From sequence record NC_061421.1: DNA of 64,000 nucleotides; one strand, given 5' to 3'. The notes under the pieces were generated by a model, which saw nothing but the letters and a program-made list of their open reading frames with translations, was not told the DNA's origin and did no database searches. Positions 34,594-56,969 of the stretch are shown here, in pieces (within the stretch, counting starts at the first letter, position 1; every line of letters starts with the position of its first letter). The position numbers were made by a program, and so were the translations under genes.

Positions 34594-34633
34594 TTTCTTT
34601 TCCTCTAAGTTTAGTTATTCAGAAAGGTCTTTC

Positions 34634-34685
34634 CTTTCCTATTTCACTGTAGCAATATATACATCAAACAAACTGCATTTCGATT
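34634..34685. repeat. 52-bp divergent-promoter repeat, copy 1 (51/52 identical to 56293..56344)
   Basis: CTTTCCTATTTCACTGTAGCAATATATACATCAAACAAACTGCATTTCGATT; contains TATATTGC on the minus strand; TATG just downstream on plus. Confidence 0.9.
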
Positions 34686-34727
34686 TTTAGAAGTTTGTAT
34701 GTTAACTGCCCTTTGAAGGAAACTATT

Positions 34728-35972
34728 GTGGAAATCAAAAACCTTTTTGACGACCGTTTTAAGAATGTCGTCTATGATACTCGCTTTGCCAGAGAAATTG
34801 CTGTTTTCACGAAGACCTTCGAGAACAAAGGTGACCATGCAAATTTCTTTGGTAGTGGATTACTCGGTACAGTACGTATCAGATGGACCAACACTGAGAC
34901 CAACGGCTTTTTCGACGATATCTTAAAAATAGACCCAGATGATCTCAAAGCCGATATCGACGAACTTGATTGCATTGATCCGTCCCATATCGTCACCACT
35001 GACGCGTTTAACTTGATGATTGTCTATTGCGTGCATCGCGTGATGACAACCGGTAAGTTATCCGCACCGCAACGAAAAGAAGTCGCCATCAATTTATTGA
35101 GAATTCTTCATTTCAAATTTATTTGCGGTATCATTACGCGTTATTTCCCCCACGGCACAGATGTTCAAATCGCCCTACGAACGTACGAAGCCATGACTAA
35201 CCGTTTTGATCTTAAGATCTACAAGACCTGGGGGAAGTTAATTACTGCCCGTGCCCAGTCAATTCTTGAGCCTAACGGTATCCACGCGAAAACTATCCAG
35301 ACTTTCGCTGATGACGACGCAGTCAAGTACATGTTGTCCGATATCCAAACACGTATCCGTACGGTAATTAAGACGTTAACTGCGCTTTATTACCAAGTCA
35401 GGGAAACAGACGGCCGCGTCATTTCGGTTTCTAATATGGTCGAAGTAGAAGGGACAATGGAGATCCGCGATATCAAACGCGCGTTCCCGAAATATCGTCG
35501 CTATCTCTTTGAACAAATGGTTGACCCGGCAAGTTTTATTCGGTTAGAGTTAGTTGATATCCTAACGAAAAACGCCCCGTCGCAGAAAAAAGCTCTGATT
35601 GCCACGCTGCAATATGTCAGTCTTCACGTTATCAACCCGGAAGCGGTTTTCAGCGGGAAAGAACCTAAACAGAGTAAAGAAGCGAAGAAACTGATTGAGT
35701 TCACGGACAGGACGTTAGAGTATACGTTTGATTTTATTCATGGTAAGGGAATTAACCCACGGAACCTGGCGGAGCTGATCGGTAGTATTAAAGCCGTTCT
35801 CAACGCTTCACGAAACAAAGAACCTGAGGTCATGTACTTACGTACAGAGGGTGACAAAATTGTCAGGGCTGCCACTGGGAAACGCGAACCTACCCCTGTT
35901 TCCGCAGAGAGAACGTCTTTCATTTTATACCTCATTCTACGGACGTTGACGATGTCCTACTACCAAAGTTAA
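34728..35972 (+). CDS. conserved putative virion structural protein
   Basis: GTG 34728 with AAGGA RBS (ORF track from TTG 34695); about 414 aa, helical; plus-strand gene with TATG upstream near the terminase block. Confidence 0.7.
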   Translation: MEIKNLFDDRFKNVVYDTRFAREIAVFTKTFENKGDHANFFGSGLLGTVRIRWTNTETNGFFDDILKIDPDDLKADIDELDCIDPSHIVTTDAFNLMIVYCVHRVMTTGKLSAPQRKEVAINLLRILHFKFICGIITRYFPHGTDVQIALRTYEAMTNRFDLKIYKTWGKLITARAQSILEPNGIHAKTIQTFADDDAVKYMLSDIQTRIRTVIKTLTALYYQVRETDGRVISVSNMVEVEGTMEIRDIKRAFPKYRRYLFEQMVDPASFIRLELVDILTKNAPSQKKALIATLQYVSLHVINPEAVFSGKEPKQSKEAKKLIEFTDRTLEYTFDFIHGKGINPRNLAELIGSIKAVLNASRNKEPEVMYLRTEGDKIVRAATGKREPTPVSAERTSFILYLILRTLTMSYYQS

Positions 35973-36009
35973 AACAAAAAAAAAAGAGAGGGCAAACGCC
36001 CTCTCTTTT
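35972..36009. terminator. bidirectional terminator, 38-nt exact repeat with 56932..56969
   Basis: AAAC(A10)GAGAGGGCAAACGCCCTCTCTTTT. Confidence 0.9.
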
Positions 36010-36018
36010 GTGCCTTAG

Positions 36019-37065
36019 TTAAAGGCCGATTTGTTTCGCTAAACGACAATAGCCGCGATAGAAGGCATCGATCAGAAGATTCTCCAACAGCGGAATACTG
36101 GGAATACTCTGACCAAAAACGTTATAGTTCCAGGTTACGTGTTTCCGGATAGCACAGGTATTTTCTGGCGTAGGGCCTTTGACCATATAAGCGATGTCCC
36201 CTACACTGGAGGTTAAAACCCAACGATCTTCGTCTTCGCGGTATTCTACATCAGTAATAAAACGGTCTGTTTTAAACTCCGCGTCGCTCAAAGGTCCGCC
36301 GATAATGTCCTCAATAGCGTGCCTCATGTATTTGTCAATCAACGGGATCTTTTGAATGTTCCCGTCGATATGGTACCCGAACCCCTTACCTAAAATGGTC
36401 CCAACGTAGAAACCTTCACAGCTGTCCTTGTCATTAGAGCGGTTGATCAACTTCAGTACCAGGTCAGATGTACTGTCGAAGAACAGCGCTACATTGGGGA
36501 GAAACTGATATTCCCCCCGGCGTTGACAGACAACCTTATGCGCCCATGCCAGCTCAAACTGAGAACGCATATACAAAATGAAATCAGCCCCGAGCTGTCG
36601 CTGCCACGTCCGGCCGTAAAAGTCCCCAACCCACGACGACTTATCGTCGGCCATAGTCCCTGAAGCAACAGGTCGACCGTTCATTAGCAGCGTACGTTGC
36701 ATGACATGAATTTTAAAGCGGCAGTTCAGCATAAAACGAACCCTGGCCTTTTCACCCATGTAATGTTGGAAGGCGTGTTGGATCGCAAGAAGGCTAAACG
36801 GTTTTTCATTTTCCTGAGTAAAATGGTAACGCACGGTGTCGCCATGTAGCGTAACAAACACGAGATGTTTCATCTCGAGCGTTGGGGTATTATCTAGCCG
36901 AATAAGAATATTTTCATTTTTATCGGTGAAGATATAACCGTGTTCATTTTTGTATGCGAAGACCGAATTGTTTTTATCAAGGGGCATTACCCCGTCGTAA
37001 TTAAAATTAGAATCGGTCTTTTTATCGTAAACGCTGGCGTAAACAAAAGTTTCAATAGTGGCCAT
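36019..37065 (-). CDS. hypothetical protein
   Basis: 348 aa, AAGGAGG RBS, TATATCAC promoter. Confidence 0.8.
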   Translation of the reverse strand: MATIETFVYASVYDKKTDSNFNYDGVMPLDKNNSVFAYKNEHGYIFTDKNENILIRLDNTPTLEMKHLVFVTLHGDTVRYHFTQENEKPFSLLAIQHAFQHYMGEKARVRFMLNCRFKIHVMQRTLLMNGRPVASGTMADDKSSWVGDFYGRTWQRQLGADFILYMRSQFELAWAHKVVCQRRGEYQFLPNVALFFDSTSDLVLKLINRSNDKDSCEGFYVGTILGKGFGYHIDGNIQKIPLIDKYMRHAIEDIIGGPLSDAEFKTDRFITDVEYREDEDRWVLTSSVGDIAYMVKGPTPENTCAIRKHVTWNYNVFGQSIPSIPLLENLLIDAFYRGYCRLAKQIGL

Positions 37066-37142
37066 GTTGATCCTCCTTAAGGGTTAGAGAATAAGAGGAA
37101 TGTCAGCAATAACGCCGACATTCCGTATCGATGTTCAATAGG

Positions 37143-37150
37143 GTGATATA
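37143..37150 (-). promoter_or_regulatory. putative early promoter TATATCAC
   Basis: motif 78 nt upstream of the 37065 start. Confidence 0.65.
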
Positions 37151-37168
37151 TACACCACTATCTTTTGA

Positions 37169-39343
37169 CTACCTATAGTAATTTGTACCCATGTATTTTT
37201 GGAACTCCGCGTGACGATTGGAGTTGATCTCTTCAATCTTCCCGGTGACGTTAATCGGCTCAGCACCTGCCTCTTCCAGACATTCGTTAAGGTAATTCAA
37301 ACGTCTTTCTAGCTTCATAGCACTGATAGGATTATCGGCAGTTTCCATTGCGGTTAAAAGTTTCTCGATCTCCCGATGGAGGAAATCAATCTCTTCTTGT
37401 TGCTCATCAATCTCATTCGCATTCCCCGCCAATACGTCCACCGCTCCGGTCAGTACCCGTCTTGAGTCTAAACCATAATAGTCTAAATTCGCCCCGTAAA
37501 TCAGTAAATAGACGGTCAGAAGATAAGCGATCACGGTGTCATCGTGACCACCTGGCGGATGGTCTATTTTACCGTTCTTTTCAATCAACCCGGTCAATTC
37601 TGCAATCAGGATTTTATCGTGTATCCGAGTAGCACCTTTCAACATTGCAATTTTCAGCACAGTTTCATAAAGCTGTCTGCGCGTGGTAGTGCCTGTACAG
37701 AAACCAAATTTGGTTTTCCGTCGAATGTAAAAGGCGTCGTCACGGCGATTCATGTCTCCTTGGATTTCCATGTAAGAAGCTGTATCTACTGACTTATTAT
37801 CAACGATCGAGTTGTAAATTCGTTTAAACGGGTCGATGCCTTTGCTGTGCAAAATCAAGCACAGGTAGTCGATGAACGTCTGTCCAGTAGATTTCCTTTC
37901 GGGGATAAAGACGGCTTTTGGATAAGAGATCAACAGATCACCTAAGAACTCAGCGTATTTAGGGATCAAAGCTTCATTGATCACTGAAACCCCGATAACG
38001 TCTGCGCTATACGGATCGAGGAAGACCAATGACAACGCATCTCGTCCCCCGCCCTCTGAGGTATCTGCCCCGATAATAAAGGTCATCGTTTTCCGGTGTT
38101 CGTCGATATATTCTTTCGGAACATACCAGTGAACGATGTAGCCGTTACGGAAAATCTCGGAGTAATCAGAATAGCGTTGGGAACCGATGGCTTTCGCCAA
38201 TAATTCTTTGTCGATCGGGTTGTTGGTCCCGGCTGCTGTCCAGATATTAAAGAAGTCTCGGTCTGCTTCTGGTCCACGTGCCATTGCGCGACGCATGTTT
38301 TCGTAGTGCTGCTCATCAGAAACACCAACCTGATTATGACTCCAGGTTCCGTTAATCAAAAGTTTAGCGTCTTTTGACTTAAGGTTGCGCTGCACCACCT
38401 CACGAAGATTAGCCTGCGAACCAGCATCGTAAAAATGGTCAGACCACCGGGCTGCTTCGTTCCACATTTTGAAGACGAAGCGTCCGTCGCGGCTGGTTTG
38501 GTCACCCGCAGTTGTGGTCATGATACTTCCCCACGGCATGTTTCTTGCTTTGGCTTTTTCGATCGCGGCGTTCATACCAGGCATCGCAGCTTTGAACGCA
38601 ATCTCGATATAGTTGATGAAGGGGGTTTCATCCCAGCCTACTGTTGGCGAGGTGTTACCGCGACCGACTTTGTTTGCACCGCCTGGGTCAGAGCGCGAAA
38701 CTGCTACTGCAAACAAATTACCACGAGTGTTGTAAGTGACCTTTTCGTTTGCGATCGTATCGGAGCGGTCAGTTACTGTTAAGTACGGCGGGAGATACTC
38801 ACGAATGCGTCGTATCATGGTGGTGGTTTCGGAACGGAGTTCGTCTGATTTAGTCACCAGTGAAATACGAGCTTTAGTGTACCGCATGTACAACAACCAC
38901 GAGTACAAGCAATAAGAGATAAGTGATTTACCGGTCTGACGGGGCTGTATCAGAAGATAATCGATGTGGTTCATGTACGACCAAATAAGCGACATATTCG
39001 CTCGGTTCGCACGTAACAGATCGCCTTCTTCACCGACGACAGGTGGGACGCGCAAACATTCTCTGAGGTAATACCAAATGTTATATTCGGCCTCTATCTT
39101 AATCGCTATCATCTGATCTTCAGTCAAATTTGGACTGAAAGGGTCAACACCAACCAGATCAGGGTTTAAAAGCGCAAGTGGCCAATGGTGATTTTTGATC
39201 CCCATTTTTTGCAATACCCCGACAAAACGGGTAAACTCTTTGTTTGGCGTATCCCAATCGGGTATAGCGCTGGGATGGTAGTCCCAGTCCTCAAGGTGGA
39301 GTATCGGCCGTGAATCATTTTCCATCGTATTGTGTATCGACAT
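37169..39343 (-). CDS. terL: terminase large subunit
   Basis: 724 aa; Walker A QPRQTGKS, Walker B VGWDE, MTTTAGD, RNase H-like nuclease IGADTSEG and HDDTVIA. Confidence 0.95.
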   Translation of the reverse strand: MSIHNTMENDSRPILHLEDWDYHPSAIPDWDTPNKEFTRFVGVLQKMGIKNHHWPLALLNPDLVGVDPFSPNLTEDQMIAIKIEAEYNIWYYLRECLRVPPVVGEEGDLLRANRANMSLIWSYMNHIDYLLIQPRQTGKSLISYCLYSWLLYMRYTKARISLVTKSDELRSETTTMIRRIREYLPPYLTVTDRSDTIANEKVTYNTRGNLFAVAVSRSDPGGANKVGRGNTSPTVGWDETPFINYIEIAFKAAMPGMNAAIEKAKARNMPWGSIMTTTAGDQTSRDGRFVFKMWNEAARWSDHFYDAGSQANLREVVQRNLKSKDAKLLINGTWSHNQVGVSDEQHYENMRRAMARGPEADRDFFNIWTAAGTNNPIDKELLAKAIGSQRYSDYSEIFRNGYIVHWYVPKEYIDEHRKTMTFIIGADTSEGGGRDALSLVFLDPYSADVIGVSVINEALIPKYAEFLGDLLISYPKAVFIPERKSTGQTFIDYLCLILHSKGIDPFKRIYNSIVDNKSVDTASYMEIQGDMNRRDDAFYIRRKTKFGFCTGTTTRRQLYETVLKIAMLKGATRIHDKILIAELTGLIEKNGKIDHPPGGHDDTVIAYLLTVYLLIYGANLDYYGLDSRRVLTGAVDVLAGNANEIDEQQEEIDFLHREIEKLLTAMETADNPISAMKLERRLNYLNECLEEAGAEPINVTGKIEEINSNRHAEFQKYMGTNYYR

Positions 39344-39389
39344 GAGGGACTCCCTCTACTGTAAATATTATCATAGAGAAAGTATAGGG

Positions 39390-39420
39390 CACAGAGAGGA
39401 GGGTTTCCCTCCTCTCTGTG
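39390..39420. terminator. hairpin between gp26-like gene and terL
   Basis: CACAGAGAGGAGG/CCTCCTCTCTGTG 13-bp stem. Confidence 0.65.
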
Positions 39421-39431
39421 TGCAAAACGAC

Positions 39432-41141
39432 TTATGATAAGGTATGACGAATAATCATCCCAGCAGTAGCCAGTTGTAGGTCTACGCCGTTCACCGTACG
39501 TACCCAGTGGAGCAATGCCAATTTCCCAACAGTACCGCCTGTCGCGATCGTGAACGTGGTATTCCACGCAGAAATCGGTTGACGGACACGAATGTTGTCT
39601 ACCTGGAGGATAAAGTGCGTAGGTACCAGCGGTTCGCTTTCGGTTTCGGTATCGTACAACGGATGTAGCCGGTAGTACAATCGATCAAGCCATTCGCTTT
39701 GCGTTTGTGCACCCATACTCATATCCGTCGACCAAACCTGAGACGAGATATACTTCAAACGGCACTCAAGTGATCCGCCGTAGTCCTCGTCACCTATTTC
39801 GAAGTTGACAAACCAAGGCGATTCGACACCGCTCTCACCGTCAGCCATTAACGTAATGTCGTTTTTCTGAACATGACGATAACTACTAAAAGAACTGGAC
39901 ACTTTTGAAATATCCAGTGCAAAGGCCATGTGTTGTTTGGTGTTATAGAGCGTCGGATCCCAGACCGCCGACCCAGGTGCCGCTTCGAGAAGATCCGTTA
40001 CTTCGTACATCGCTAAACGATCGAGGCTTTGCATGAAATGACGAAGTTTGTAACCGTTACCGTTACTCTGCCATTCTGGGAACATAAAGAGTTTCACCGA
40101 ATAAGCATTTGGGAGCGTCACTGATTCAATGGTATACGCTACGGGAATAGTGCCCGAGGCAGTGGCCGTACCCTGATAACTTTCGGTACTGTCCAGCTGA
40201 TAAAACAGTGTCAGTGGACTGGTCTGCCCAGATTGAGTCGGGATGAACTCGCTCAAACCGGAAAGATAGATTTTACTACCATCGACCGGTTTGATCACTG
40301 AACTACCGTCGGTATAAGTCACCCTTACGCTAACATCAATCGATGTCATCAACAGATTAACAGGTACGTTGAGACGGTTCGGGTCGGTGGCACTTAAATA
40401 ACTACTGACCAGTGCAACAGAATCGATAGATCGTTTTGCCGAGTTAGATTGACGAATAATTCCTGAATCTACCACGGTCATGGTAAAGCGACTCGTCGGG
40501 AGCCCTGCCGCATCGTAGAAGATAACAAGAACGATTTCGCCGTTCTCAATTTTTCTCGTCGCATTAGCCGTAACGGGAATGCGGTAGTTACCCGTCGTGT
40601 CACCCTCAATGGTCATCAACGGGATTTCGTCACTCTCCAGTTGACCAGATTGGTTGTAGTACGCGGACAACACTTCCAGGTTACCGGTAGTGGATGTGTT
40701 AGAGAACACACGAACCTTTGTCGCGGTCGGCTGATAGGCTCTCAATAAGCTGTCGAAAGCCATCTCTGGCGGAGAGACAGTGTTATCAACGTAAACAAAG
40801 AACCCAGGTTGCGGGTAACGACTCCCGACCCCTAAAAGAATATCGATGGAGTTATCGATAGTCGTAGGGACGTTGTACGCGATCCAGGTCGATAACAGTG
40901 TTGACGTATCCACTTCAGTAACGATATAAAACCCAGAATTTTTATCGAAGATACGATCCCCTACTTTAGGGACGAATCGTCCGATGTTCCCCGAACCTAT
41001 TCCGGCGGGACCGACATAAATTTCAGAGCGCGCCCACTCTTTGTACAACCCGTTCGGGTTCCAGATAGGTACATCAGCTGGCGTATCGTCCGTTAACACC
41101 AGCGCGTATTGTACTCCACTTGTAGTGGTCGATGTGGCCAT
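39432..41141 (-). CDS. virion structural protein, probable baseplate component (phiKZ gp26-like)
   Basis: 569 aa, beta-rich; terL-gp26-gp27-gp28-sheath-tube synteny. Confidence 0.75.
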   Translation of the reverse strand: MATSTTTSGVQYALVLTDDTPADVPIWNPNGLYKEWARSEIYVGPAGIGSGNIGRFVPKVGDRIFDKNSGFYIVTEVDTSTLLSTWIAYNVPTTIDNSIDILLGVGSRYPQPGFFVYVDNTVSPPEMAFDSLLRAYQPTATKVRVFSNTSTTGNLEVLSAYYNQSGQLESDEIPLMTIEGDTTGNYRIPVTANATRKIENGEIVLVIFYDAAGLPTSRFTMTVVDSGIIRQSNSAKRSIDSVALVSSYLSATDPNRLNVPVNLLMTSIDVSVRVTYTDGSSVIKPVDGSKIYLSGLSEFIPTQSGQTSPLTLFYQLDSTESYQGTATASGTIPVAYTIESVTLPNAYSVKLFMFPEWQSNGNGYKLRHFMQSLDRLAMYEVTDLLEAAPGSAVWDPTLYNTKQHMAFALDISKVSSSFSSYRHVQKNDITLMADGESGVESPWFVNFEIGDEDYGGSLECRLKYISSQVWSTDMSMGAQTQSEWLDRLYYRLHPLYDTETESEPLVPTHFILQVDNIRVRQPISAWNTTFTIATGGTVGKLALLHWVRTVNGVDLQLATAGMIIRHTLS

Positions 41142-41142
41142 G

Positions 41143-43701
41143 TCACGATTCCTTTATAAAGAAATAATCGTTAAGAGCAAGACGATTATTGAGATAGTAA
41201 AGATTGATGTTCTGTAAGAACTGCCAACGTTTCGTCGTGATTCCGACAGCGGATGAAAACGGGTGCGCATCGATGAAGATATAATTTGTGTTCCAGGTAC
41301 TCCTGCACGGGTCGATGTCTAAATACGCAGTGTACTTAGCCATGATCTTATCCAGAGCGACCTTATCGTTAACACTTAGAGGCTCACTGATCGTCCCGTT
41401 TTCAAGATCAAAGAGTAAACGGGTAATGACAACAGAGAACATTCTGTATCGTTCATTGATCGGGTTCGGTCCCGTTAATTCTTTCTCCGGGAATTTCAAC
41501 GTCATGTAATCATTAACGCGCTTATCGGACTCCGTGCCCATTTCAATCAGTTCCGCGTTGGCATTACTGGAAATACCATAAAGCGGGACATAAACCATTT
41601 CTTCAGAATAAGCCAGTCCATTAGGGAGTAACGGAATTTGTTTTTCATCCGCATCTTCGATGAACGGGACCGTACTGGGGTCTACTAATTTCCCATCGAT
41701 GACAGTCCGAATAACTTTGTCGTCTCGTACATCAAAACGCCCGTTAACACTGACATAACCGTGGTCAACAAATCCAATGCTTTTCGGAGGAGAATGGGTG
41801 ACAGTGGGCGTTTCCCAACCTAAACCAGCAAACGTGAATTTTTGCATCGAGCCGAGCGATTCGTCGTAATAACGATTAGTGATCAAAGTACCCTGATTAC
41901 CAGAAAGAATAAAATCAAGTCCTTCAATCAACGGATGACCGTTCATCCAAACACGTAATTGACGTGGTCGAATAGGTAGTACAGTTCCTGCGGTTTTACT
42001 GTAGGTCAAGGTGAAACGATAAATACCGTCCGAGCTGTCCACTAACTGATCGTAAACCAACGCATCCTTACTAGTGAGAATTAATCCCATGTTTCGTGCT
42101 TTAACGTGAATCCAGGTCACAACGTTATTCAGGACAGTATAGTGCGTTCCTTCGACAGCAGGCACCCATTCACCGGTTAAGACACCATTGTTAATAGGGC
42201 AGGTGAAGAAGTAGTATTGATACTTATCGTCCAATGTGGCGTTATCATTGCTCGGTGACCAAGTAATGGCTTTCGTCCCCCAACCAATAATCCCTTCCAC
42301 CAACGCCGCCGCTTCATCTTTCACGAAATACCGCTCTGCATAACCGTGTTTATGCCACCCCAGTAAAAGGCCGTTCTCGTCGTACTCAAAAAGCGTTGAG
42401 CAAAGCGACAGACCAAAAGGAACGTCGACGTAACCGCCGTTAGAGGAGGGAGTAACTTTCGTCGGGTTTAATGCAAACAGCGTAGCCAACGCATTGTAAC
42501 CGTACGCATTGATTACGTCGGTCGCTGTGAAGCTCGCCCAGAAGTTTCTCATGATGGCGGTATAAAGTGAATTTTCAAGATTTTCAACACGCCATTCTGT
42601 CAGCGTGGAATCAATCCCGATCATCGCCCTTAAAATGTCGGTATCACTTAAGCGGTAAAGGGTTTCGATTCGGTTGACTTCGTGAATCAACGGACGATTG
42701 TAACCGGACTCCCTCAGGTGTAGACGAATATAACAGTTTTCATACGACGTCCAGCCGTCATTGATGTAAGCAGAGACGTAACCGGTGGGAATACTGTAAT
42801 CGGCATGTGTGACGTTCCGTAAGCTGTTTTCTTTATTACGGTGGTAATAACGTCCGCTCAATGCGCTGGCACTGTCGACTTTGTAAAGGTAAAGATCGAT
42901 GTCGTCAACGTAATAAATTTCGTTGTCGTGGGTATTTTTACTCGGGTGCAGTAAATATTTCTTCAGATTATCCAGTGTTGACGTATAATCGTATAACGAT
43001 GAGATTTTAAAATCAACCACATGACTAACCGCAGAGTCGTAGAACGCCTCGATAAGATCCCCAATGGCAATGTCCGTGGATTTGATCTCAGGTTTCCAAA
43101 CCCCATTGTGAAAGATGTTCACAACGCCCGTTAACGCCTGCAGCGGCCGCAGTGCTGTAATAAACGTCGCAATATCGCTTTGACGGACGATTTCTCGTCC
43201 GAGATAAGCAATCTTTTTCCCGATATTGTTACTGCGATCCGAACGGAAAAAAGCGTTGTTGTAAATACGAAGATAAACTTTTTCTTTCGCCAGTTCCCAG
43301 CGTGTAGAATAGTCTTTGATCGCGATAATTAAATTGTCGTCGTAGGTCCGAAGAACGTAACTCGAAAACAAAGGGAGTTTGATCCCCGTTTCCAAATAGA
43401 GGTCAACAACTAAATCGTTGACCTCAGCGTAAGGCCCTAACGCCATCCATACCCCGCGTTTATCGGGAAGTCCTGTACGCCATCTGCTGTTATTCCCGAT
43501 CTGATAAAGATGGTAGACGTCGGTTTCTGTGGGTAACGGGGTGTCAACCCAAAGAATGGAATGAGAGACCTTTACCCCGCTGTCTTTCGTGATTCGTGTT
43601 AAGTCCAGGATTACTTGCCGATCTTGAATAGGCGCGCACCAGAGATTTGTACGTGCATGATCGAGAAGGAAACTTTCAGTAACTGAATTCATTACACGCA
43701 C
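41143..43701 (-). CDS. large virion structural protein (phiKZ gp27-like)
   Basis: 852 aa; HARTNLWCAPIQDRQ N-terminus; synteny. Confidence 0.75.
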   Translation of the reverse strand: MRVMNSVTESFLLDHARTNLWCAPIQDRQVILDLTRITKDSGVKVSHSILWVDTPLPTETDVYHLYQIGNNSRWRTGLPDKRGVWMALGPYAEVNDLVVDLYLETGIKLPLFSSYVLRTYDDNLIIAIKDYSTRWELAKEKVYLRIYNNAFFRSDRSNNIGKKIAYLGREIVRQSDIATFITALRPLQALTGVVNIFHNGVWKPEIKSTDIAIGDLIEAFYDSAVSHVVDFKISSLYDYTSTLDNLKKYLLHPSKNTHDNEIYYVDDIDLYLYKVDSASALSGRYYHRNKENSLRNVTHADYSIPTGYVSAYINDGWTSYENCYIRLHLRESGYNRPLIHEVNRIETLYRLSDTDILRAMIGIDSTLTEWRVENLENSLYTAIMRNFWASFTATDVINAYGYNALATLFALNPTKVTPSSNGGYVDVPFGLSLCSTLFEYDENGLLLGWHKHGYAERYFVKDEAAALVEGIIGWGTKAITWSPSNDNATLDDKYQYYFFTCPINNGVLTGEWVPAVEGTHYTVLNNVVTWIHVKARNMGLILTSKDALVYDQLVDSSDGIYRFTLTYSKTAGTVLPIRPRQLRVWMNGHPLIEGLDFILSGNQGTLITNRYYDESLGSMQKFTFAGLGWETPTVTHSPPKSIGFVDHGYVSVNGRFDVRDDKVIRTVIDGKLVDPSTVPFIEDADEKQIPLLPNGLAYSEEMVYVPLYGISSNANAELIEMGTESDKRVNDYMTLKFPEKELTGPNPINERYRMFSVVITRLLFDLENGTISEPLSVNDKVALDKIMAKYTAYLDIDPCRSTWNTNYIFIDAHPFSSAVGITTKRWQFLQNINLYYLNNRLALNDYFFIKES

Positions 43702-48702: not shown

Positions 48703-49299
48703 TCAACTTAAATGCTTAATTGCGAGATCAAACATTTTTTGCTTTACATCATCGAACCCGTAAAGACGTTGATAGGCGGTTTGGTTTTGATTCCAAAGTT
48801 TGTCCATTAAGAAGACATTGCTCACTTCAGAAGCGTCAGTACCGCCCCAATGCGGATTATCATCAAAGAGATAATAATCATACCCTTTTAAGTTGGCGTC
48901 CAGCCAAGTCTTTTTACAGGGGACTTTCTCAGGGTCTAAGAAGACCCCTTCCATTTCAACGCCAAGGCGGTCAAACTGCCGCTGCGTAAATTCAGCAGCG
49001 CGAGGGTGATACCCGCGGTGCGTAGCGAACATCGTTTGTAGGCGCGCTCCAAAGACCGTTTGCATTTCTTTAATCAAAGCAGGAAGAGCTTCAAAACCAG
49101 GCACCCAGTCCGCGTGTTCCATGAACGAACCGTCTTCTAAAACCGCCTTGAGGAAAGGAGCCTCAAACGGATCCGTACGCGAAAGTCGATTTTTCCAAAC
49201 CAGCCCGCAGTTAAACGTATCGTTAATCCAGCGTGTCATGGCTTTTTCGGTTTCAAACTTGGTGTCATCCAAGTCAAACACGAACATTACTTTTTTCAC
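48703..49299 (-). CDS. HAD-superfamily phosphatase (5'(3')-deoxyribonucleotidase-like)
   Basis: 198 aa; motif I FDLDDT, motif II ATHR, Lys, motif IV LFDDNP. Confidence 0.8.
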   Translation of the reverse strand: MKKVMFVFDLDDTKFETEKAMTRWINDTFNCGLVWKNRLSRTDPFEAPFLKAVLEDGSFMEHADWVPGFEALPALIKEMQTVFGARLQTMFATHRGYHPRAAEFTQRQFDRLGVEMEGVFLDPEKVPCKKTWLDANLKGYDYYLFDDNPHWGGTDASEVSNVFLMDKLWNQNQTAYQRLYGFDDVKQKMFDLAIKHLS

Positions 49300-49799
49300 G
49301 ATTTAAGTTTCCTTTGCAGATAAAGATCCAGTGAATCTTTGAGTTTTTCCAAATACTGCTGACAAGAACTGGATAACGTGATTTTCCCACTGGGGCCGGA
49401 AATTGTCAATAGACCGTAGGATAGGGATAATACGTTAAACGCAGCCAGATCCACCAGAATCGTGTGCGAACCCCAAGACACAATAATCTCCAAGTCTTGT
49501 ACAAAACGCGTTTTGGGGGCTTCTGAGGAGTTCTCGTAGACATTCTCGTGAAGTTTGTAGTCACTCCATTGTGCAGTGATGTACTCGTACACAGTTTCCG
49601 CTTCAAAGATGTCATCAGTTTCGATATTGATATTAACATCATCGTAGTTACGTACATTGACGTACGTAGACGGACAGACAAGACCTACGCTCTGGCCTTT
49701 TTTAACAAACTTGATCTTTTCCAGATCTACGTAAAACGTCCCTTTAGCCGTTGTGATAAACAACGTAGTATTATTGATTCTCTGGAGTATTGAATTCAT
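49296..49799 (-). CDS. hypothetical protein
   Basis: 167 aa. Confidence 0.7.
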   Translation of the reverse strand: MNSILQRINNTTLFITTAKGTFYVDLEKIKFVKKGQSVGLVCPSTYVNVRNYDDVNINIETDDIFEAETVYEYITAQWSDYKLHENVYENSSEAPKTRFVQDLEIIVSWGSHTILVDLAAFNVLSLSYGLLTISGPSGKITLSSSCQQYLEKLKDSLDLYLQRKLKS

Positions 49800-50715
49800 T
49801 GTTACTTACCTTATTGATGTTTTGGAGAATAAGTGCGTGTAAAATATCAAACGAAACAGGGTAATCAAAGACCCCGCCCGCAGCGTCGGGGTGCCCACCG
49901 CCGTTAAAGTCGTGTGCGAGTCTTTGCGCCCAACCCGTCCCTTTACGAGAACGGAAAGAAAGACCTAAACCTTTTTTGTTTAACGTTACGTTTACAACGA
50001 GGTCTACGTCATCTCTTTTTGCTAACAGCATCGAGGCTGCCTCAGATGCGTAATAGTACGGTGCCGAAAGATAAACCGCAGTAAACTGGAAAACGCCATT
50101 TGTTTCCACCGGGAAACATACTTTTTTATCGAGATGAAACGTGATATTTTTATTTCTGGATTCGATGAGTAAATCAACGACAGGTCGGATTTCCGCCTCC
50201 ACTCTTTCTTTGCTATACTCTAGCAGCGCGTTGAACGGCGGGAAGATATCTTCTTTGTTACCCTTCTTCAGGAAACGAACGAAGTACTCGTGATATTCCC
50301 GTTCACTGTCCGTAGCAATCCACAAATCTCGATTGTTAATCAAACGAATAACTTCCGGCATCTCGCCGTGGTTCAAATACTTCCAGGTTAAACCAGAACC
50401 AGCCAGATTACGATCAAAGTGAACGATAGTACCGGGGAAGATTGATCGGATGGTTTTACAATCCTCTTCTTTATCGTCGTGGTGATCGAGGATAACCAAT
50501 CCGCCTAATAAATGTTTGTTTTCTTCTACCCATTCTACCGGCGGGGTGAAATCGAGGAAATGAGCGTAGTGCTTTTTACCTTCCTCAAGTTTTGGCATGG
50601 CGCGGTAGTTTACCGGAACAAATGTCGGTTTGTCAGAGTACTTGTAGAAAAGTGCCGCTGCCGCGAAACCATCCATGCAAAGATCGTGATAAAAAACAAT
50701 TAATTCAGTTTCCAT
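49771..50715 (-). CDS. DHH/DHHA1-family phosphoesterase
   Basis: 314 aa; YHDLCMDG, FLDF, ILDHH, GGGHPDAAG. Confidence 0.9.
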   Translation of the reverse strand: METELIVFYHDLCMDGFAAAALFYKYSDKPTFVPVNYRAMPKLEEGKKHYAHFLDFTPPVEWVEENKHLLGGLVILDHHDDKEEDCKTIRSIFPGTIVHFDRNLAGSGLTWKYLNHGEMPEVIRLINNRDLWIATDSEREYHEYFVRFLKKGNKEDIFPPFNALLEYSKERVEAEIRPVVDLLIESRNKNITFHLDKKVCFPVETNGVFQFTAVYLSAPYYYASEAASMLLAKRDDVDLVVNVTLNKKGLGLSFRSRKGTGWAQRLAHDFNGGGHPDAAGGVFDYPVSFDILHALILQNINKVSNNEFNTPENQ

Positions 50716-50770
50716 TTTACTTCCTCAACAAAAAAATAAATTAGGGGAGAATTTTCTCCCCTAATAGAGT

Positions 50771-51019
50771 TTAGACTATTTTCAATATCTGGCGATGGTA
50801 ATAACGCTCAGTCAGTGCATTCAGTGAAAATTCTGCACTTTCAGGACGCGCAATAAAATCATCGCAAACCTTCTGGGTTTCTTCAAAGACCAGACGCTTA
50901 CGAATACGTTCTGCAACACGCCGTACCATTTTGGCTTTACCTTTGTGTTCCCGAAACCCGATAGCCAAAGTGACTAACAAATCGATCATCTCATGATCGA
51001 GAGCGATATTTCTGCTCAT
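50771..51019 (-). CDS. hypothetical protein
   Basis: ATG 51019 in ATGA overlap with the upstream stop; 82 aa. Confidence 0.7.
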   Translation of the reverse strand: MSRNIALDHEMIDLLVTLAIGFREHKGKAKMVRRVAERIRKRLVFEETQKVCDDFIARPESAEFSLNALTERYYHRQILKIV

Positions 51020-51366
51020 CCGGCAATATCTACATTTGAGTAGAGAACGGAACAAGTGTCGTCGCCGTCGAAGACCACGCCAGATTCATTCATCCATTTA
51101 GTTTCGCTTTTAGATTTTTTATCCCGGAAAGACGCGGTGGTATAAACTTTATACCCCGGAGTTTGAGCTTCTCCTTCCATAGCGCTCAAGGGACTGGGTT
51201 TACTGCGGAGTACAGCTACTGAAACGGTCTTGGTGTCCACAGTAGGGAAAGTCGCCACAGCTTCCTTAACTGCATTTTGTACTCGGGAGATACAGGCCGC
51301 ATTCGGCGCTGCGATTGCTTGGTTGATTGTCAGGGATGCAATAGCCAGCAGAATAATTTTTTTCAT
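51016..51366 (-). CDS. exported protein with signal peptide and Cys pair
   Basis: MKKIILLAIASLTINQAIA|A; AAGGAG RBS. Confidence 0.8.
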   Translation of the reverse strand: MKKIILLAIASLTINQAIAAPNAACISRVQNAVKEAVATFPTVDTKTVSVAVLRSKPSPLSAMEGEAQTPGYKVYTTASFRDKKSKSETKWMNESGVVFDGDDTCSVLYSNVDIAG

Positions 51367-51466
51367 TGTTTTCTCCTTCTAAAACGCGGTTCATCTGTTC
51401 GGTGTTTAAGTTCAAGCCAATTTCACTCATAGCACGAAAGAAATCGACATCGTTAATTTTGTTCAT
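51266..51466 (-). CDS. small hypothetical protein
   Basis: 66 aa; ATGA-coupled to the upstream gene but overlaps the next gene by 100 nt. Confidence 0.45.
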   Translation of the reverse strand: MNKINDVDFFRAMSEIGLNLNTEQMNRVLEGENNEKNYSAGYCIPDNQPSNRSAECGLYLPSTKCS

Positions 51467-51864
51467 TCAGTGATCACAAAGGTGTTTTCAGAAAACGGAC
51501 GGAGGTTACCTCGTTCAATCCAATACCCGTAATTCAAGAGTGAATCAAACCATCTGAGTATAGGTTGAGCTAGAGAGTGTATTTCTATTTCTTCAATGAT
51601 CGTTAACCAATTCGTCTCAACTTCAATATCAAGTAAATATCCTTCGTAGTCGCAGTTGAGTACATCGTAGAGCGTCTCAGCAAAGAGATTTACATCGATG
51701 TCAAGATAATGAAGATCGTTTCGGGAAAGTATTCGTAGTGTATCGTATATTGGACAGAGCGTCTCAAAAAAGAGCATCGCATGATTTTTTGAGAGCACCC
51801 TAATAAAGAAAGGATATTCTACGTAGACCCTTTTACGCCGTGTTCCCGTAGAATTGTAAGTCAT
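51463..51864 (-). CDS. small acidic protein resembling the 20-24 kb array members
   Basis: 133 aa; same N-strand, helical core and C-terminal strand architecture. Confidence 0.7.
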   Translation of the reverse strand: MTYNSTGTRRKRVYVEYPFFIRVLSKNHAMLFFETLCPIYDTLRILSRNDLHYLDIDVNLFAETLYDVLNCDYEGYLLDIEVETNWLTIIEEIEIHSLAQPILRWFDSLLNYGYWIERGNLRPFSENTFVITE

Positions 51865-52072
51865 CGGGCCGCCGCTCCTTCAATTCACGTAAAAGGACGG
51901 TCAGTGGCGCCGGGGATAATGCGACTTTTCCCAGCCACGAATAACAGTCGTTCTCTTTTACGGTTAGTCTGACAAAACGCGCTGTTGTTTTAATGGCATT
52001 TTGTGTTTTATGTATAGCGTATGCCAACTGCAATGTCAGTAGGATATCGTCCCATTCTGTTTCATTTCCCAT
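51833..52072 (-). CDS. hypothetical protein
   Basis: 79 aa. Confidence 0.65.
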   Translation of the reverse strand: MGNETEWDDILLTLQLAYAIHKTQNAIKTTARFVRLTVKENDCYSWLGKVALSPAPLTVLLRELKERRPDDLQFYGNTA

Positions 52073-52074
52073 TT

Positions 52075-52485
52075 TTAACCTCTGTCGATAGTGAAAATAT
52101 CAAAACCAAAAAACCCGGGGGCGTCTTTGTTCTGTTCACCAAGGCGCCAGTAGTCGTTAAACGCCCGACGACGGATTCTTAACACTCCCTCGAACGCGAC
52201 CAAAGTAGGGTCAGTAAAAAGGAGATTGGCTTTGATTCCTTTCTCCGTAAGTCGGAAATTAGTGAAGAGGTGAGTCGGCTCTTTAAATTTCCTGTAACGC
52301 AGATAAAATTGATCAAAGGTCTCAGTGTGTTTCTTATCCAAAGAAGGATTGAGTTCGCCTTTTAGACTTTCTCGTGCTTTGAACGCGCGAAGTAGACGCT
52401 CTAGATCCGTTGGACGCATGAAATCTGGTAAGGGTAAATAAACATCGACAATGTGATCTTGATTAGCGACTTTAAACACAGACAT
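52075..52485 (-). CDS. hypothetical protein, possible degenerate prohead-protease fold
   Basis: 136 aa; LKGELNP...THLFT...FGFD. Confidence 0.7.
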   Translation of the reverse strand: MSVFKVANQDHIVDVYLPLPDFMRPTDLERLLRAFKARESLKGELNPSLDKKHTETFDQFYLRYRKFKEPTHLFTNFRLTEKGIKANLLFTDPTLVAFEGVLRIRRRAFNDYWRLGEQNKDAPGFFGFDIFTIDRG

Positions 52486-52542
52486 TTCCTTTTGTGATGA
52501 TTACAACGAAAAAAGAGGGTGACTACTCACCCTCGAAATAAT

Positions 52543-52725
52543 TTAAATTTTACAAGCCCCGCCTTCACAGTCATCGCTAGCTTCGATTTCCGGTTGGGCT
52601 TCGATGAACGCTTCGTTCTTTGCCGTCGCTGCTTCAACTTCTGCATCGCTGAGCGTAAATGAGTCAAAGTCGAGACTCTCATCTTTGGTACCGCTGAAAC
52701 GGGTACCGGGAACAGGTTGTGCCAT
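52543..52725 (-). CDS. 60-aa acidic protein ending in an NrdA-like redox tail (DDCEGGACKI)
   Basis: AAGGA RBS; hairpins on both sides (about 52509-52535 and 52802-52838); C-terminus nearly matches E. coli NrdA ...DDGCESGACKI. Confidence 0.8.
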   Translation of the reverse strand: MAQPVPGTRFSGTKDESLDFDSFTLSDAEVEAATAKNEAFIEAQPEIEASDDCEGGACKI

Positions 52726-52843
52726 TAGAACTTTTCCTTTTTTAATCCGAGACGTAATGCCTCAAAGAAAGACAAGTAAGACTTAAAAAAGAAAAAGACC
52801 CAGAGGCATAGAGGGTTACAAACCCTCTATGCCTTCTTTGAGA

Positions 52844-53314
52844 TCAATCAAGGTAAAAACATTTCCCGCCTTTGTTCTCCGCTACTAATTTTTTCAGTCC
52901 GTTAGTAGAGAAGACCACGTAGGCATCCGGGTGACCCTCAACGTACAGTTTGAAATTTTTCGCTTTGGTTACCTTAACGGTGTCGAAGAACGCACGCCAG
53001 TTACTGGATCCAACTCTAGAGAGGGGGGTAATCATCTGGTACGTATCCCCAGCTATGTCAATAACCAACGTATAACGGTCATCGGTAGTAGAAAGAGATT
53101 GTCCTTTCGCGTCGGTCAGGAAAAGCGCCTGATCTGGCCAGTTGTCACCGGTATCGCGACACGAGAACGACAGTGAATAACCGTCTGTACTTTCGGTATA
53201 AAACTCAAGGGTTCCTTGCTGATATGACTCTGTCCAGCGATTCACAACAGCTTGTGAGGCGAAGGACATAAACGCAGAAAGAGCCACCAGTGTTGCAGCG
53301 ATAAATTTTTTCAT
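52844..53314 (-). CDS. exported (periplasmic) hypothetical protein
   Basis: 156 aa; MKKFIAATLVALSAFMSFASQA signal peptide; two Cys. Confidence 0.8.
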   Translation of the reverse strand: MKKFIAATLVALSAFMSFASQAVVNRWTESYQQGTLEFYTESTDGYSLSFSCRDTGDNWPDQALFLTDAKGQSLSTTDDRYTLVIDIAGDTYQMITPLSRVGSSNWRAFFDTVKVTKAKNFKLYVEGHPDAYVVFSTNGLKKLVAENKGGKCFYLD

Positions 53315-53404
53315 GATATTTACCTTTTAGATAGAAGTGTGATTGATTAAAGTGCGGTTTCAGTGGGATGAATCTATAAGAGCGCTTTGCGACTCGGTGA
53401 AGAC

Positions 53405-53683
53405 TTACGCGTAGTACCAGTATCTTCTTTCAGATTCGAGTAAAGAAACCAGAATGAAGCGGAAAAATATACTCATCAAATAACAAATCAGACAAGTTAA
53501 CTTTACCCCGTAAGATGTCCAGTCGCGAAGAGTTCTGACTAAGCGACCTTTCCAGGAATTGTCGAACAATATAGCATCTTTCGCGGCGAATTTTGCCAAT
53601 TGCCAATTAGCAATAAAGAGCAGAGTACCCAGTATCAGCAAAACTATTAACGCAACGAAGGTGATTAACAATAAAGTTTCCAT
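53405..53683 (-). CDS. membrane protein
   Basis: 92 aa, two hydrophobic segments, AAGGA RBS. Confidence 0.75.
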   Translation of the reverse strand: METLLLITFVALIVLLILGTLLFIANWQLAKFAAKDAILFDNSWKGRLVRTLRDWTSYGVKLTCLICYLMSIFFRFILVSLLESERRYWYYA

Positions 53684-53715
53684 GGAAATGTCCTTAGCGA
53701 AGGGAGAAATGTCTT

Positions 53716-54054
53716 TTAGATGTATTTGAGGTCGTCTGTGTCTTCGCGCATCTGGCGGAGGCGTTCACCTCGCGAACTGTAATAGTTTCGACGAAGTCTG
53801 CGACGATCTTTACGGTTTTGTTGGTAACTAGGTTCAGTTATCAACGTTTCGACAAAAGGTGGTGATTCAGATTCTACCGGTGCAACGACAGTTTCCTCTT
53901 CAGTAAACCCGTTTTCCATTACAGGGGAAACAGGTTCAATTTCAGGGGCAGTGTTAACTTTCTTTTCTGCCGCTGCGCTTTTGTTATTGGCAAAGTACCA
54001 AAAGAGCATTGCCAACAAAGTTATAAGCAGAACGATAGCTATTGTTTCGATCAT
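53716..54054 (-). CDS. N-anchored membrane protein with acidic linker and Arg-rich tail
   Basis: ATG 54054 with AAGGAG RBS (ORF track from 54099). Confidence 0.75.
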   Translation of the reverse strand: MIETIAIVLLITLLAMLFWYFANNKSAAAEKKVNTAPEIEPVSPVMENGFTEEETVVAPVESESPPFVETLITEPSYQQNRKDRRRLRRNYYSSRGERLRQMREDTDDLKYI

Positions 54055-54074
54055 TGGAGTACTCCTTTTAGTAA

Positions 54075-54635
54075 CTATGCGAATGTGGTTTCTGTACAAG
54101 AAAAACCATAGTGTTTATCATTAGGCCGAGTTCCGACCTTTTTCTTTTTGATCGCCTGGCGTCTGTTGTAACGGATTTGACGATACCGTAGTTTAACTAC
54201 CCATACGTAAAGGTTCTTAAGAATAAAGGACCCTGCAATTAATCCAGATCCCAGCATAACTGCTTTTGCCAACGGATGGGGTATGAAGTAGTTATAACTG
54301 AAGGCCAAAGTCGCGGCGGTGCCTGTGATGACATAGATGGGGATTTCAGAGCACATCGCTTGGTTGAGTTGATAATATTCAAGTAGCTCGCGAATAATCT
54401 TAATCTTTTCGGCGTCGATTTCTTTTTCAGCCGGGAAGAAATAACGAATAACCGCGTTTGCATCCAATCCAACCGTGTCAATGAATCTAGCCCAGTTTTC
54501 TTTCCCGGCGAGTACGTTGATAACTCGAATTACCGCAACCAAGAGTTCGCTATGTTTAGCGGAACACTTTATTGCCGACAATACAGAGTCCACATCTTCC
54601 CAAGCGCGCCGGTAATCCATCGATCGTTTTTTCAT
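54075..54635 (-). CDS. membrane protein
   Basis: 186 aa, two C-terminal TM segments. Confidence 0.7.
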   Translation of the reverse strand: MKKRSMDYRRAWEDVDSVLSAIKCSAKHSELLVAVIRVINVLAGKENWARFIDTVGLDANAVIRYFFPAEKEIDAEKIKIIRELLEYYQLNQAMCSEIPIYVITGTAATLAFSYNYFIPHPLAKAVMLGSGLIAGSFILKNLYVWVVKLRYRQIRYNRRQAIKKKKVGTRPNDKHYGFSCTETTFA

Positions 54636-54946
54636 TTAGCTTCTTCCAGAATAACGTTGACCCGACTTTCGCGTTTGATAGCCCAGGTTAAGATAACTGC
54701 GTTCAATAACCCAATGACAACAAATGCAACGAAATCAACCGATACCATCACCGCGCCCAGAATACCGATAATGGTCAGAATGGCCAGAAAGGCGTAGTTG
54801 ATAAAGATCATATTCCGAGAACGTTTCTGATACTTCTCTTCGGTTGATTTTTTACCGGCACGAATAAAAGCCACGGTAATGCCGTTGAGGAATAAAGAGA
54901 CAATTCCGAACAGAACGATCGCTACGCAGATTAAAGTGGTTAACAT
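54632..54946 (-). CDS. three-TM membrane protein
   Basis: 104 aa, very hydrophobic. Confidence 0.75.
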   Translation of the reverse strand: MLTTLICVAIVLFGIVSLFLNGITVAFIRAGKKSTEEKYQKRSRNMIFINYAFLAILTIIGILGAVMVSVDFVAFVVIGLLNAVILTWAIKRESRVNVILEEAK

Positions 54947-55339
54947 GATTTTTACCTATTTATTTAGTAAAAGGGTTGAATGAATTTGTCCTCTAAAGAA
55001 GTGTACAAATCGCATAGAGCGATGCCCAAGATCGACCGGTGAACTCACAGCCTTTTATCTTGCAGCGTCGTGTCGTCTCAGAGAGTGTTTACTACGGCCT
55101 ACGATTCATAATCTCAGACATAACTCGATTTGTTAGTCTAGAGTGAATCGCCCGTCAAAGCCTCGATCTGTTACGGCAACGATAACAACGAATTTTACCA
55201 ATGTACAACTTCTTCTTACGAGATATGAGAGAGTGAGAAAATACACTTTGCTTTAGAATTAAGTAACACTACTTATTTCTAAGCGTTTCATCATAAGCTC
55301 TTCCTTTCAAGTTAAGTGTGCCGAGGGTGGAGTTACTGC

Positions 55340-55687
55340 TTACGCAGTTGCAACGCCAGCTTCGTCAACAGAAGCTTGAGTCGTTTCAACCGGTGCAGTT
55401 ACATCGCCGCTTTCTTTTGGGAAAAGCAGCGCCTTCAGGTTTTTGTAAGTGTCGGTGACGTAGGTCACGATCAGCAGACCCGCTACCATATATGCCGCGA
55501 CTTCGACCGCCAGGCTCAGGAAGAAGATTGCGAAGAAGATCAGGATCGCCATCAGAATCGTGTCGAATACGAAGCTACCTAACGCTTTACCCTTCTCAGT
55601 GATAGAGTAGGTAGTGCTTTCGGTATCGCCTTCAACGACAGTTTCTTTAGCGACGAATTGTGCGAAAAACGATTTGAATTTGTTCAT
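55340..55687 (-). CDS. two-TM membrane protein
   Basis: 115 aa, high-expression codon style, AAGG RBS. Confidence 0.8.
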   Translation of the reverse strand: MNKFKSFFAQFVAKETVVEGDTESTTYSITEKGKALGSFVFDTILMAILIFFAIFFLSLAVEVAAYMVAGLLIVTYVTDTYKNLKALLFPKESGDVTAPVETTQASVDEAGVATA

Positions 55688-55770
55688 GATATTTACCTTT
55701 TAGATGGATTAGATAATAACTGCATTTGAGAGAGTACTACTAACACCGTTGAGAGACGGTGGCCTAGAGC

Positions 55771-55887
55771 TTAAATAAACTGTACTGCCGCGATTACGAT
55801 CAGCGCTAAAATACAAGCTGGGAGGACAGCCAAATCCAGAGCAATAGCCATTGCCCCAGCCCCGAATAAAGAGAGTGCGTTTTTCAT
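55771..55887 (-). CDS. 38-aa hydrophobic peptide (not in ORF track)
   Basis: TAATG coupling; MKNALSLFGAGAMAIALDLAVLPACILALIVIAAVQFI. Confidence 0.55.
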   Translation of the reverse strand: MKNALSLFGAGAMAIALDLAVLPACILALIVIAAVQFI

Positions 55888-56057
55888 TACGCTGGCTCCC
55901 CGTGGTCTGTGTTCATCCATTTTCCGGTATTAGCCTGGGAATCGATGATAGCGCCGACCATACCGGCCACAAAAGCAATAAGAATCGCTGGAACTACTGT
56001 CAGTTCAAACATAGCTGAAACCAACAGAACAATAATTAGCATGATGAAATAAGTCAT
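55887..56057 (-). CDS. 56-aa two-TM membrane protein
   Basis: GAGG RBS before ATG 56057 (MTYFIML); ORF track extends to 56153. Confidence 0.7.
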   Translation of the reverse strand: MTYFIMLIIVLLVSAMFELTVVPAILIAFVAGMVGAIIDSQANTGKWMNTDHGEPA

Positions 56058-56071
56058 TTTAATTACCTCTT

Positions 56072-56230
56072 TTAAAGTTCGTATGAGATTGCCATGATCA
56101 GGAAGAAAGGGGAAAGCGCATACCAGGTAATGACACTTACAACCCCGTAACAAATAGCCATCGGTATACTCACGCCGAAGATGAAAAGAGTGATGAAAAA
56201 TCCCATTAGGAAGATAATTAATTCTTTCAT
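56072..56230 (-). CDS. 52-aa hydrophobic protein (not in ORF track)
   Basis: GAGGA RBS; MKELIIFLMGFFITLFIFGVSIPMAICYGVVSVITWYALSPFFLIMAISYEL. Confidence 0.6.
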   Translation of the reverse strand: MKELIIFLMGFFITLFIFGVSIPMAICYGVVSVITWYALSPFFLIMAISYEL

Positions 56231-56292
56231 ACTTTCCTCTTAGACCTCTTAGGTCAGTAAATGGATGTTTAGTTATCAGAAAAGCGTTATAT

Positions 56293-56344
56293 CTTTCCTA
56301 TTTCACTGTAGCAATATATACATCAAAAAAACTGCATTTCGATT
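56293..56344. repeat. 52-bp divergent-promoter repeat, copy 2
   Basis: 51/52 identical to 34634..34685. Confidence 0.9.
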
Positions 56345-56388
56345 CTTAAGAGTTTTTATGACCCCTTCTACAACACAGGCTCTCTACG

Positions 56389-56928
56389 ATGAAAAAACTC
56401 ACTATTTGGGGACTCCCTGTCCCTTTACTCGGTTTTCTTCACTGGTTCGTTTTTCTATTGATTTATTTCTTTGCGTTAATTATTTGTGTTTTTGTCACCC
56501 CGTTCCTTCCTATTTTCGCAACTAAGGAAGGTAGACTCCCTACGTGGTTAGCCTGGTTTGATACCCCAGATAACACCCTTGATGGGGATTCAGGCTGGAA
56601 AGAGAAGCATTCGCTTTGGGTAAAATTTTTACCGGATTGGGCCGAGACTTATGTGGCCCGAGTATTCTGGTTATACCGTAACCCTCTTTATGGTTTCTCG
56701 ATCAGCGTTCTAGGGGCCCCTAAGGATAAACACCTCCAGCCGGTTCTGGACGGTAAAGGCTTTGACGTAAAAGGGACGTATAAGTCGCATTACTGGATGG
56801 TTTATTTCATGCGGGATGATCATGTCAAGAAACGCCGTTTTAAAGTGTATATCGGATGGAAACTCAAAGCGGAAGGATTTGATAAATATCAGTTCGCTTT
56901 TTTGATTAACCCTTTCCAAACGCCGTAA
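56389..56928 (+). CDS. membrane-associated phage hypothetical protein
   Basis: 179 aa; N-terminal TM; WFDTPDNTLDGD and WLYRNPLYGF motifs I recall from many phages. Confidence 0.8.
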   Translation: MKKLTIWGLPVPLLGFLHWFVFLLIYFFALIICVFVTPFLPIFATKEGRLPTWLAWFDTPDNTLDGDSGWKEKHSLWVKFLPDWAETYVARVFWLYRNPLYGFSISVLGAPKDKHLQPVLDGKGFDVKGTYKSHYWMVYFMRDDHVKKRRFKVYIGWKLKAEGFDKYQFAFLINPFQTP

Positions 56929-56931
56929 TTG

Positions 56932-56969
56932 AAACAAAAAAAAAAGAGAGGGCAAACGCCCTCTCTTTT
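56932..56969. terminator. bidirectional terminator, exact copy of 35972..36009
   Basis: 38-nt identity. Confidence 0.9.

Follow-up and report, generated by a model that had tools for sequence, protein, structure and literature searches.

How have two unrelated genes of one phage come to lie in almost identical regulatory frames 21.7 kb apart? The genes, gp112 and gp139, are both on the plus strand of a 64,000-nt stretch of sequence record NC_061421.1 (the window, to which positions refer unless genome coordinates are given), which matches bases 62001-126000 of Klebsiella phage vB_KpM_FBKp24 (phiKp24; MW394391, 307,210 bp) at 100% identity. At locus A (gp112) and locus B (gp139) one repeated block precedes the gene and another follows it. 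The original prediction took the two frames for a reusable expression cassette into which different open reading frames (ORFs) are swapped. We arrive at another reading, held with moderate confidence: the frames belong to the ordinary transcription punctuation of phiKp24, homogenised by short-tract gene conversion, and are no mobile holder of genes.

The frames at loci A and B

The repeats on which the cassette had been built were all recovered. The upstream repeat matches at 51 of 52 nt (34634-34685 = 56293-56344); these are the first 52 nt of a whole that spans 68 nt at 93% (34634-34701 versus 56293-56360), and a fainter likeness reaches left to 34609/56267, giving 95 nt at 86%. Within it, GCAATATA (read on the minus strand, TATATTGC) points left at 34652-34659 and 56311-56318, and TATG points right at 34698-34701 and 56357-56360. 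Behind the genes, the terminators at 35972-36009 and 56932-56969 are identical at 38 of 38 positions. The two genes are unrelated, as had been claimed (best BLASTP E = 6.3).

In a self-comparison of the 307-kb genome, the A and B elements are the top dispersed repeats, bar one 131-nt pair at 73% and self-palindromic hairpins, and for this reason we do not attribute the likeness to chance. An assembly artefact is ruled out as well, because the same arrangement recurs in the independently assembled Centimanus genome and in contigs of three unrelated runs (one isolate run and two metagenomes), and because a 42-nt node shared by the isolate-run contigs has about twice the flanking depth (490 versus ~260).

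Probable gene conversion between loci A and B

We aligned the A and B elements of phiKp24, Centimanus, KpLz-2_45 and KpZh_1. Over the left 29 columns, which hold the leader, element A of phiKp24 differs from its paralog B at 10 positions and from its Siatvirus ortholog at one; over the 51-column core there is one difference from the paralog and there are 10 from the ortholog (Fisher p = 3.5e-4 for the left/core contrast). B compared with B between genera gives 10 differences on the left and two in the core, and Siatvirus A compared with Siatvirus B gives seven in each. Element A is a chimera, with an orthologous left part and a B-like core. The terminators follow a like pattern, in that both genera have the same B type, letter for letter, while stem top and loop are different in the A terminator of Siatvirus. 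About 10 extra nt on the right flank are shared by the Siatvirus A and B terminators and missing from phiKp24 A, which hints at separate exchanges in that lineage.

Under the mechanism that we propose, the promoter core and the terminator of locus A would have been overwritten by sequence from locus B (ectopic gene conversion), with gp112 left in place. The event would fall after the split from Siatvirus and, because phiKp24 and Centimanus share one later substitution in the A core, before the split between those two. Both the direction and the mechanism we infer from the site patterns. The case resembles concerted evolution by ectopic gene conversion, in that paralogs within one genome are more alike than orthologs and the tract has a sharp boundary; it differs in that the phiKp24 tracts are ~50 and 38 nt long, are regulatory, lie on both sides of a non-homologous gene and belong to a nucleus-forming jumbo phage.

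An ancient duplication of the whole promoter-gene-terminator unit, with one gene replaced later, would also place both flanks at the same two loci, and these were already alike in the ancestor shared with Siatvirus (promoter blocks 86%-88%, terminators sharing a stem). However, no residual similarity of the genes or of their ends is seen, the 26 nt of coding sequence before the terminators being ~54% alike; both genes have old, separate histories; and a duplication leaves it unexplained that the two copies resemble each other more closely in phiKp24 than in Siatvirus. We regard it as highly improbable.

Predicted transcription punctuation in phiKp24

Genes of phiKp24 lie mostly on one strand, and tubulin and nuclear-shell proteins are encoded; by these features it is a phiKZ-like nucleus-forming jumbo phage (PMC8386662). 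In the ORF map the minus strand carries 304 of the 345 genes (~88%), and there are ~25 plus-strand islands. A beta-prime-like RNA polymerase fragment was found at genome 254547-254840 (E = 1.9e-6, below the Pfam cut-off). Minus-strand units would be set apart by composite modules, each a GC-rich hairpin with a T-run and then a ~37-nt promoter around the motif TATATCAC-N5-TG. A lone plus-strand gene in this layout would need a promoter of its own (a TATG signal like those that the non-virion polymerase of phiKZ uses), a hairpin at which the transcripts converging from either side both stop, and a promoter that restarts the minus-strand genes on the far side. Loci A and B, with a third locus, C, outside the window, would supply all three. 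At the other plus-strand islands (~20), neither the promoter block nor the terminator of A and B was found.

The leftward signal belongs to a genome-wide family. Intergenic matches to TATATCAC-N5-TG (also written TATAT(C)AC-N5-TG) fall on the minus strand in 26 of 26 cases, with sites 16-130 nt 5' of most minus-strand genes and often right behind a hairpin and T-run; examples in the window are at 32639, 37150 and 62533. The canonical sites (n = 23) share a consensus of ~37 nt, with an upstream box ~13 nt from the AT-rich core. A conserved AT-rich motif of ~10 nt, placed upstream of operons and confined to the coding strand, is what a phiKZ-type early promoter would look like, and according to a review (PMC7598289) such motifs upstream of early operons can be found bioinformatically in jumbo phages that encode RNA polymerases. 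The leftward promoter may be called early by analogy with phiKZ. Host sigma-70 promoters were rejected as a candidate, the best scan hit (9/12) being no better than shuffles. None of the plus-strand islands has the TATATCAC-N5-TG motif (chance of zero plus-strand matches ~0.04), and the plus-strand genes of phiKp24 may therefore all be non-early. A deposited promoter feature at 32603-32625, of T3/T7-type look by sequence, is probably a mis-prediction, since it falls within the leader of a canonical TATATCAC promoter and has an ACTAAAC box in it.

The rightward signal is the tetramer TATG, 30-38 nt before the start codon at A, B and C on the plus strand. All 12 aligned copies keep it (loci A-C of four phages), as do loci A and B of phage Moabite. 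Across the genome, TATG occurs 41 times at 25-55 nt upstream of start codons, as against 10-16 times for control tetramers (3-4-fold enrichment), and one copy stands 32 nt before terL. Its enrichment before start codons, its presence before terL and its conservation at A, B, C and in Moabite are the marks of a phiKZ-type late promoter, which PMC7598289 describes as a TATG tetramer at the start site used by the non-virion RNA polymerase. The term late, too, would hold for these signals by analogy with that account. The upstream block as a whole thus reads, plausibly, as a putative back-to-back (divergent) promoter pair. With phiKZ promoters it shares an AT-rich ~10-nt motif before operons that can be found by sequence, and a bare TATG shortly before late or structural genes. 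It differs in that the phiKp24 motif is clade-specific and phiKp24 start sites and timing are predictions, and a tight back-to-back early/late pair with a shared leader does not appear in the pertinent passages of PMC7598289.

The downstream block is plausibly a strong two-way terminator, and termination there is predicted for both converging transcripts. By folding and pattern scan it is a GC-rich hairpin between an A-run and a T-run, as a two-way intrinsic terminator would be, with fold energies of -20 to -22 kcal/mol for both strands (z from about -5 to -6.6). The other plus-strand islands also end in hairpins, all of them perfect, with differing stems. Of the divergent early/late promoter and bidirectional terminator in the original prediction, then, the paired promoters and the two-way hairpin are supported by motif family, TATG and folds, and the early and late classes are carried over from phiKZ.

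Selection alone might keep A and B alike, with no transfer between the loci, if the same polymerase or regulator has to bind at both. That the core overlaps with a functional motif family, that B is nearly invariant between genera, and that TATG, AGGAAA and the AACTAAAC box of the leader are conserved in every copy would all fit. Yet function does not require identity, because the 23 canonical promoters agree only loosely over their ~37 nt and terminator stems differ at every other locus; no functional requirement accounts for the identical loop and stem of two terminators. Nor does selection explain the left/core chimera of A or the lineage-specific substitutions (columns 50-51) that A and B have in common within one genome. 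We consider selection alone unlikely.

Several points must be set against punctuation homogenised by gene conversion, the reading that we prefer. Rapid divergence of the A core in Siatvirus, with phiKp24 unconverted, could also produce the four-sequence site patterns; the comparison draws on two deep lineages only, and Moabite is too remote to tell ancestral from derived states. To convert both flanks while sparing the gene in the middle would take either two patches or a heteroduplex with a looped-out stretch. The start sites, timing and termination of phiKp24 units are predictions from sequence, and covariation in the leader hairpin is small (consensus energy -1.6 kcal/mol, changes mostly from G-C to G-U).

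Constancy of the genes between the frames

A mobile or reusable cassette would use the frames as recombination handles for exchanging ORFs, in the style of the promoter-early stem-loop (PeSL) cassettes of T4-type phages (Arbiol et al. 2010, PMC2839356; Comeau et al. 2014, PMC4122927), in which such shuffling is documented. Near-identical frames around unrelated genes are what it predicts; a copy without cargo exists (module D, below), composite terminator-promoter modules are common in the genome, and the first gene behind the leftward promoters of A and C differs between phiKp24 and its 98% relative. The cargo itself, however, is constant. The related set comprises 13 records of two genera (phiKp24, Centimanus and the Siatvirus group), and homologs of gp112 and gp139 stand at the same loci in all 13, which leaves a swappable cassette unsupported. 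A whole-genome comparison turned up two further copies of the upstream block, C and D, which the original prediction lacked, yet at current sampling gp112 and gp139 are what the relatives always have at A and B, the outcome that the original prediction had named as its refutation. The glycosyltransferase pair at C is likewise unchanged in them.

The histories of the genes also argue against exchange. gp112 is a core virion gene with homologs in ~290 phiKZ-like phages, and already in Moabite its homolog (58% amino-acid identity) stands alone and inverted next to terL and the gp113 homolog, with a promoter pair of its own (TATATAAC and TATG, divergent) and a terminator for both directions. The Moabite frames are unrelated to those of phiKp24, and those at its A and B loci are unlike each other. 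No other cargo between the frames was found in a pattern scan of IMG/VR, which matched one known Siatvirus genome only, or in a scan of JGI metagenomes, which matched nothing. Metagenome contigs (Logan) break at the repeat, and every loose end matches a known paralogous flank, that of B or of Siatvirus B; in raw-read run X22, 0 reads fell on the stretch. Promoter-bearing spacers hold 6 of the 39 intergenic breakpoints between phiKp24 and Centimanus (15%) and make up 16% of spacer length, so that breakpoints are not enriched there; this speaks against a PeSL-like link between mosaic breakpoints and promoter modules. Taken with the constant cargo and the core status of gp112, these results make a cassette with swapped ORFs very unlikely in our view.

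Some likeness to PeSLs remains: small composites of terminator and early promoter are repeated through a large lytic phage genome, and their copies are alike enough to recombine. PeSL promoters, in contrast, are sigma-70-like and the phiKp24 motif is not (9/12, at shuffle level), and PeSLs flank variable ORFans in hyperplastic regions, whereas the cargo in phiKp24 is conserved and gp112 is a core virion gene; variable, dispensable cargo was not seen in the 13 genomes. The stem-loop is joined directly to the promoter at D and in several canonical modules, as in PeSLs, but at A and B a gene separates the two halves, by 1.3 kb and 0.6 kb, respectively. Comparisons of breakpoints and contigs gave no evidence of indels or mini-circles produced by recombination. 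Morons are accessory genes that some relatives have and others lack, each set between neighbouring genes under a promoter and terminator of its own. gp112 and gp139 resemble them in being single genes, each with a private promoter and terminator, amid genes that are transcribed differently; they differ from them in that both occur in every relative, and in that gp112 is a core structural gene.

In Moabite, the gp139 homolog, which like gp139 is a DUF7338 protein, stands directly upstream of a tailspike gene on the same strand (L013 2501-5301). This hints at a functional link between DUF7338 membrane proteins and host-surface recognition.

A four-member subfamily of putative promoters

Copy C of the upstream block lies at genome 139711-139793, before the plus-strand glycosyltransferase gene pair; module D lies within the window. 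The cores of A, B, C and D end in TGC, AGC or TTC, whereas canonical sites end in CAC. In intergenic DNA the AACTAAAC box occurs at these four sites only, and their leaders also have an imperfect inverted repeat in common. By these signatures A, B, C and D form a subfamily with a non-canonical core and a common leader, and since core and leader are shared, the leftward units of A-D are probably co-regulated. The first genes behind the A and C leaders, when compared, proved not to be one family. As for the elements themselves, Rfam returned no known RNA family, giving only weak terminator look-alikes far below gathering scores, and a structured leader RNA was dropped as a candidate, its hairpin being only weakly supported by covariation.

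One could go further and see in A-D a regulon peculiar to the clade, whose non-canonical early-type promoters share a leader or operator and exchange sequence by ectopic recombination inside the phage nucleus. Such a system would be PeSL-like, with promoters of phage polymerases as its basis; now and then it could insert opposite-strand genes between terminator and promoter, or take them out, D being the empty site. We think this quite doubtful.

Some variation among relatives was seen at these modules. The stem-loop of the D terminator (59363-59390) in Centimanus (L015 about 290-320) is the exact reverse complement of that in phiKp24, with the same flanks; it has been flipped in place. At locus C, Centimanus (216099-216796) and KpLz-2_45 carry an extra gene of ~210 aa right behind the leader, which phiKp24 lacks; this indel (phiKp24 genome 139693-139720) is bordered by an 11-nt repeat that resembles a ribosome-binding site.

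Consequences and further features of the window

The A/B frames reveal no new gene-shuffling mechanism. They do provide, with the other elements described here, a first outline, at sequence level, of how transcription would be punctuated in nucleus-forming Klebsiella jumbo phages of the phiKp24/Siatvirus group. The outline comprises a candidate early promoter consensus, late signals (TATG), terminators for both directions and the leader family of four, and it should be useful for annotation and engineering. Regulatory elements 21.7 kb apart have probably undergone short-tract gene conversion, which is of interest for how actively genomes of this kind recombine. Crossing-over between A and B, which are direct repeats, would remove or duplicate the 21.7 kb between them, with terL and the tail sheath gene, and the deletion product would not be viable alone. 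A tube gene had also been placed in this interval, but the deposited annotation has none there.

Table 1. Positions of the regulatory elements and adjoining genes in the window
Feature	Position	Strand	Description	Basis or remarks
Element A	34609..34701		93-nt back-to-back promoter block in the spacer between gp111 (minus) and gp112 (plus)	Repeat family with B and C; four-phage alignment
Leader at A	34609..34644	-	Leader of the putative leftward transcript; imperfect inverted repeat 34621-34639, AACTAAAC box 34609-34616 (minus-strand reading)	Blocks conserved in 11 copies
Leftward promoter of A	34645..34679	-	Putative; non-canonical core TATATTGC-N5-TG (34645-34659), T-rich upstream part	Variant of TATATCAC-N5-TG
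TATG at A	34698..34701	+	Candidate late start signal (phiKZ type) for gp112, whose GTG start is 30 nt downstream	Conservation, positional enrichment
gp111	34270..34593	-	First gene of the leftward unit at A; truncated allele, diverged from a 224-aa gene of relatives	
gp112	34728..35972	+	Conserved virion head protein, lone plus-strand gene	phrog_2921, head structural annotation
Terminator A	35972..36009		Predicted two-way hairpin, stem 35985-36006 between A-run and T-run; would end gp112 and the converging gp113 unit	
Element B	56267..56360		Back-to-back promoter block between gp138 and gp139	Leftward core 56304-56318, TATG 56357-56360
gp138	56072..56230	-	First gene of the leftward unit at B	
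gp139	56389..56928	+	DUF7338 membrane protein, lone plus-strand gene	
Terminator B	56932..56969		Identical to terminator A; would end gp139 and the converging gp144-gp140 unit	
gp144	58839..59255	-	First gene of the unit that would start at D and end at terminator B	
Module D	59276..59393	-	Leader and promoter (core 59317-59331) abutting a related hairpin terminator (~59354-59393), no plus-strand gene between	

The genes next to the frames show some further changes (Table 1). Around gp111 (34245-34521), identity between phiKp24 and Centimanus falls from 97.6% to 80.8% at a breakpoint inside the gene; its 107-aa product is 49% identical to the 224-aa form, and contigs of two other runs hold the long form. 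Between the gp140 and gp141 homologs, Centimanus (L006 3198-4166) has a ~1-kb gene annotated as an endonuclease, absent from phiKp24 (57460-57502), and the insertion is flanked by a 43-nt duplication of the gp141 3' end. Elsewhere in the window, 53304-53335 and 55677-55708 form a 32-nt repeat (94%) that covers the start codon and the ribosome-binding region of the minus-strand genes gp130 and gp135.

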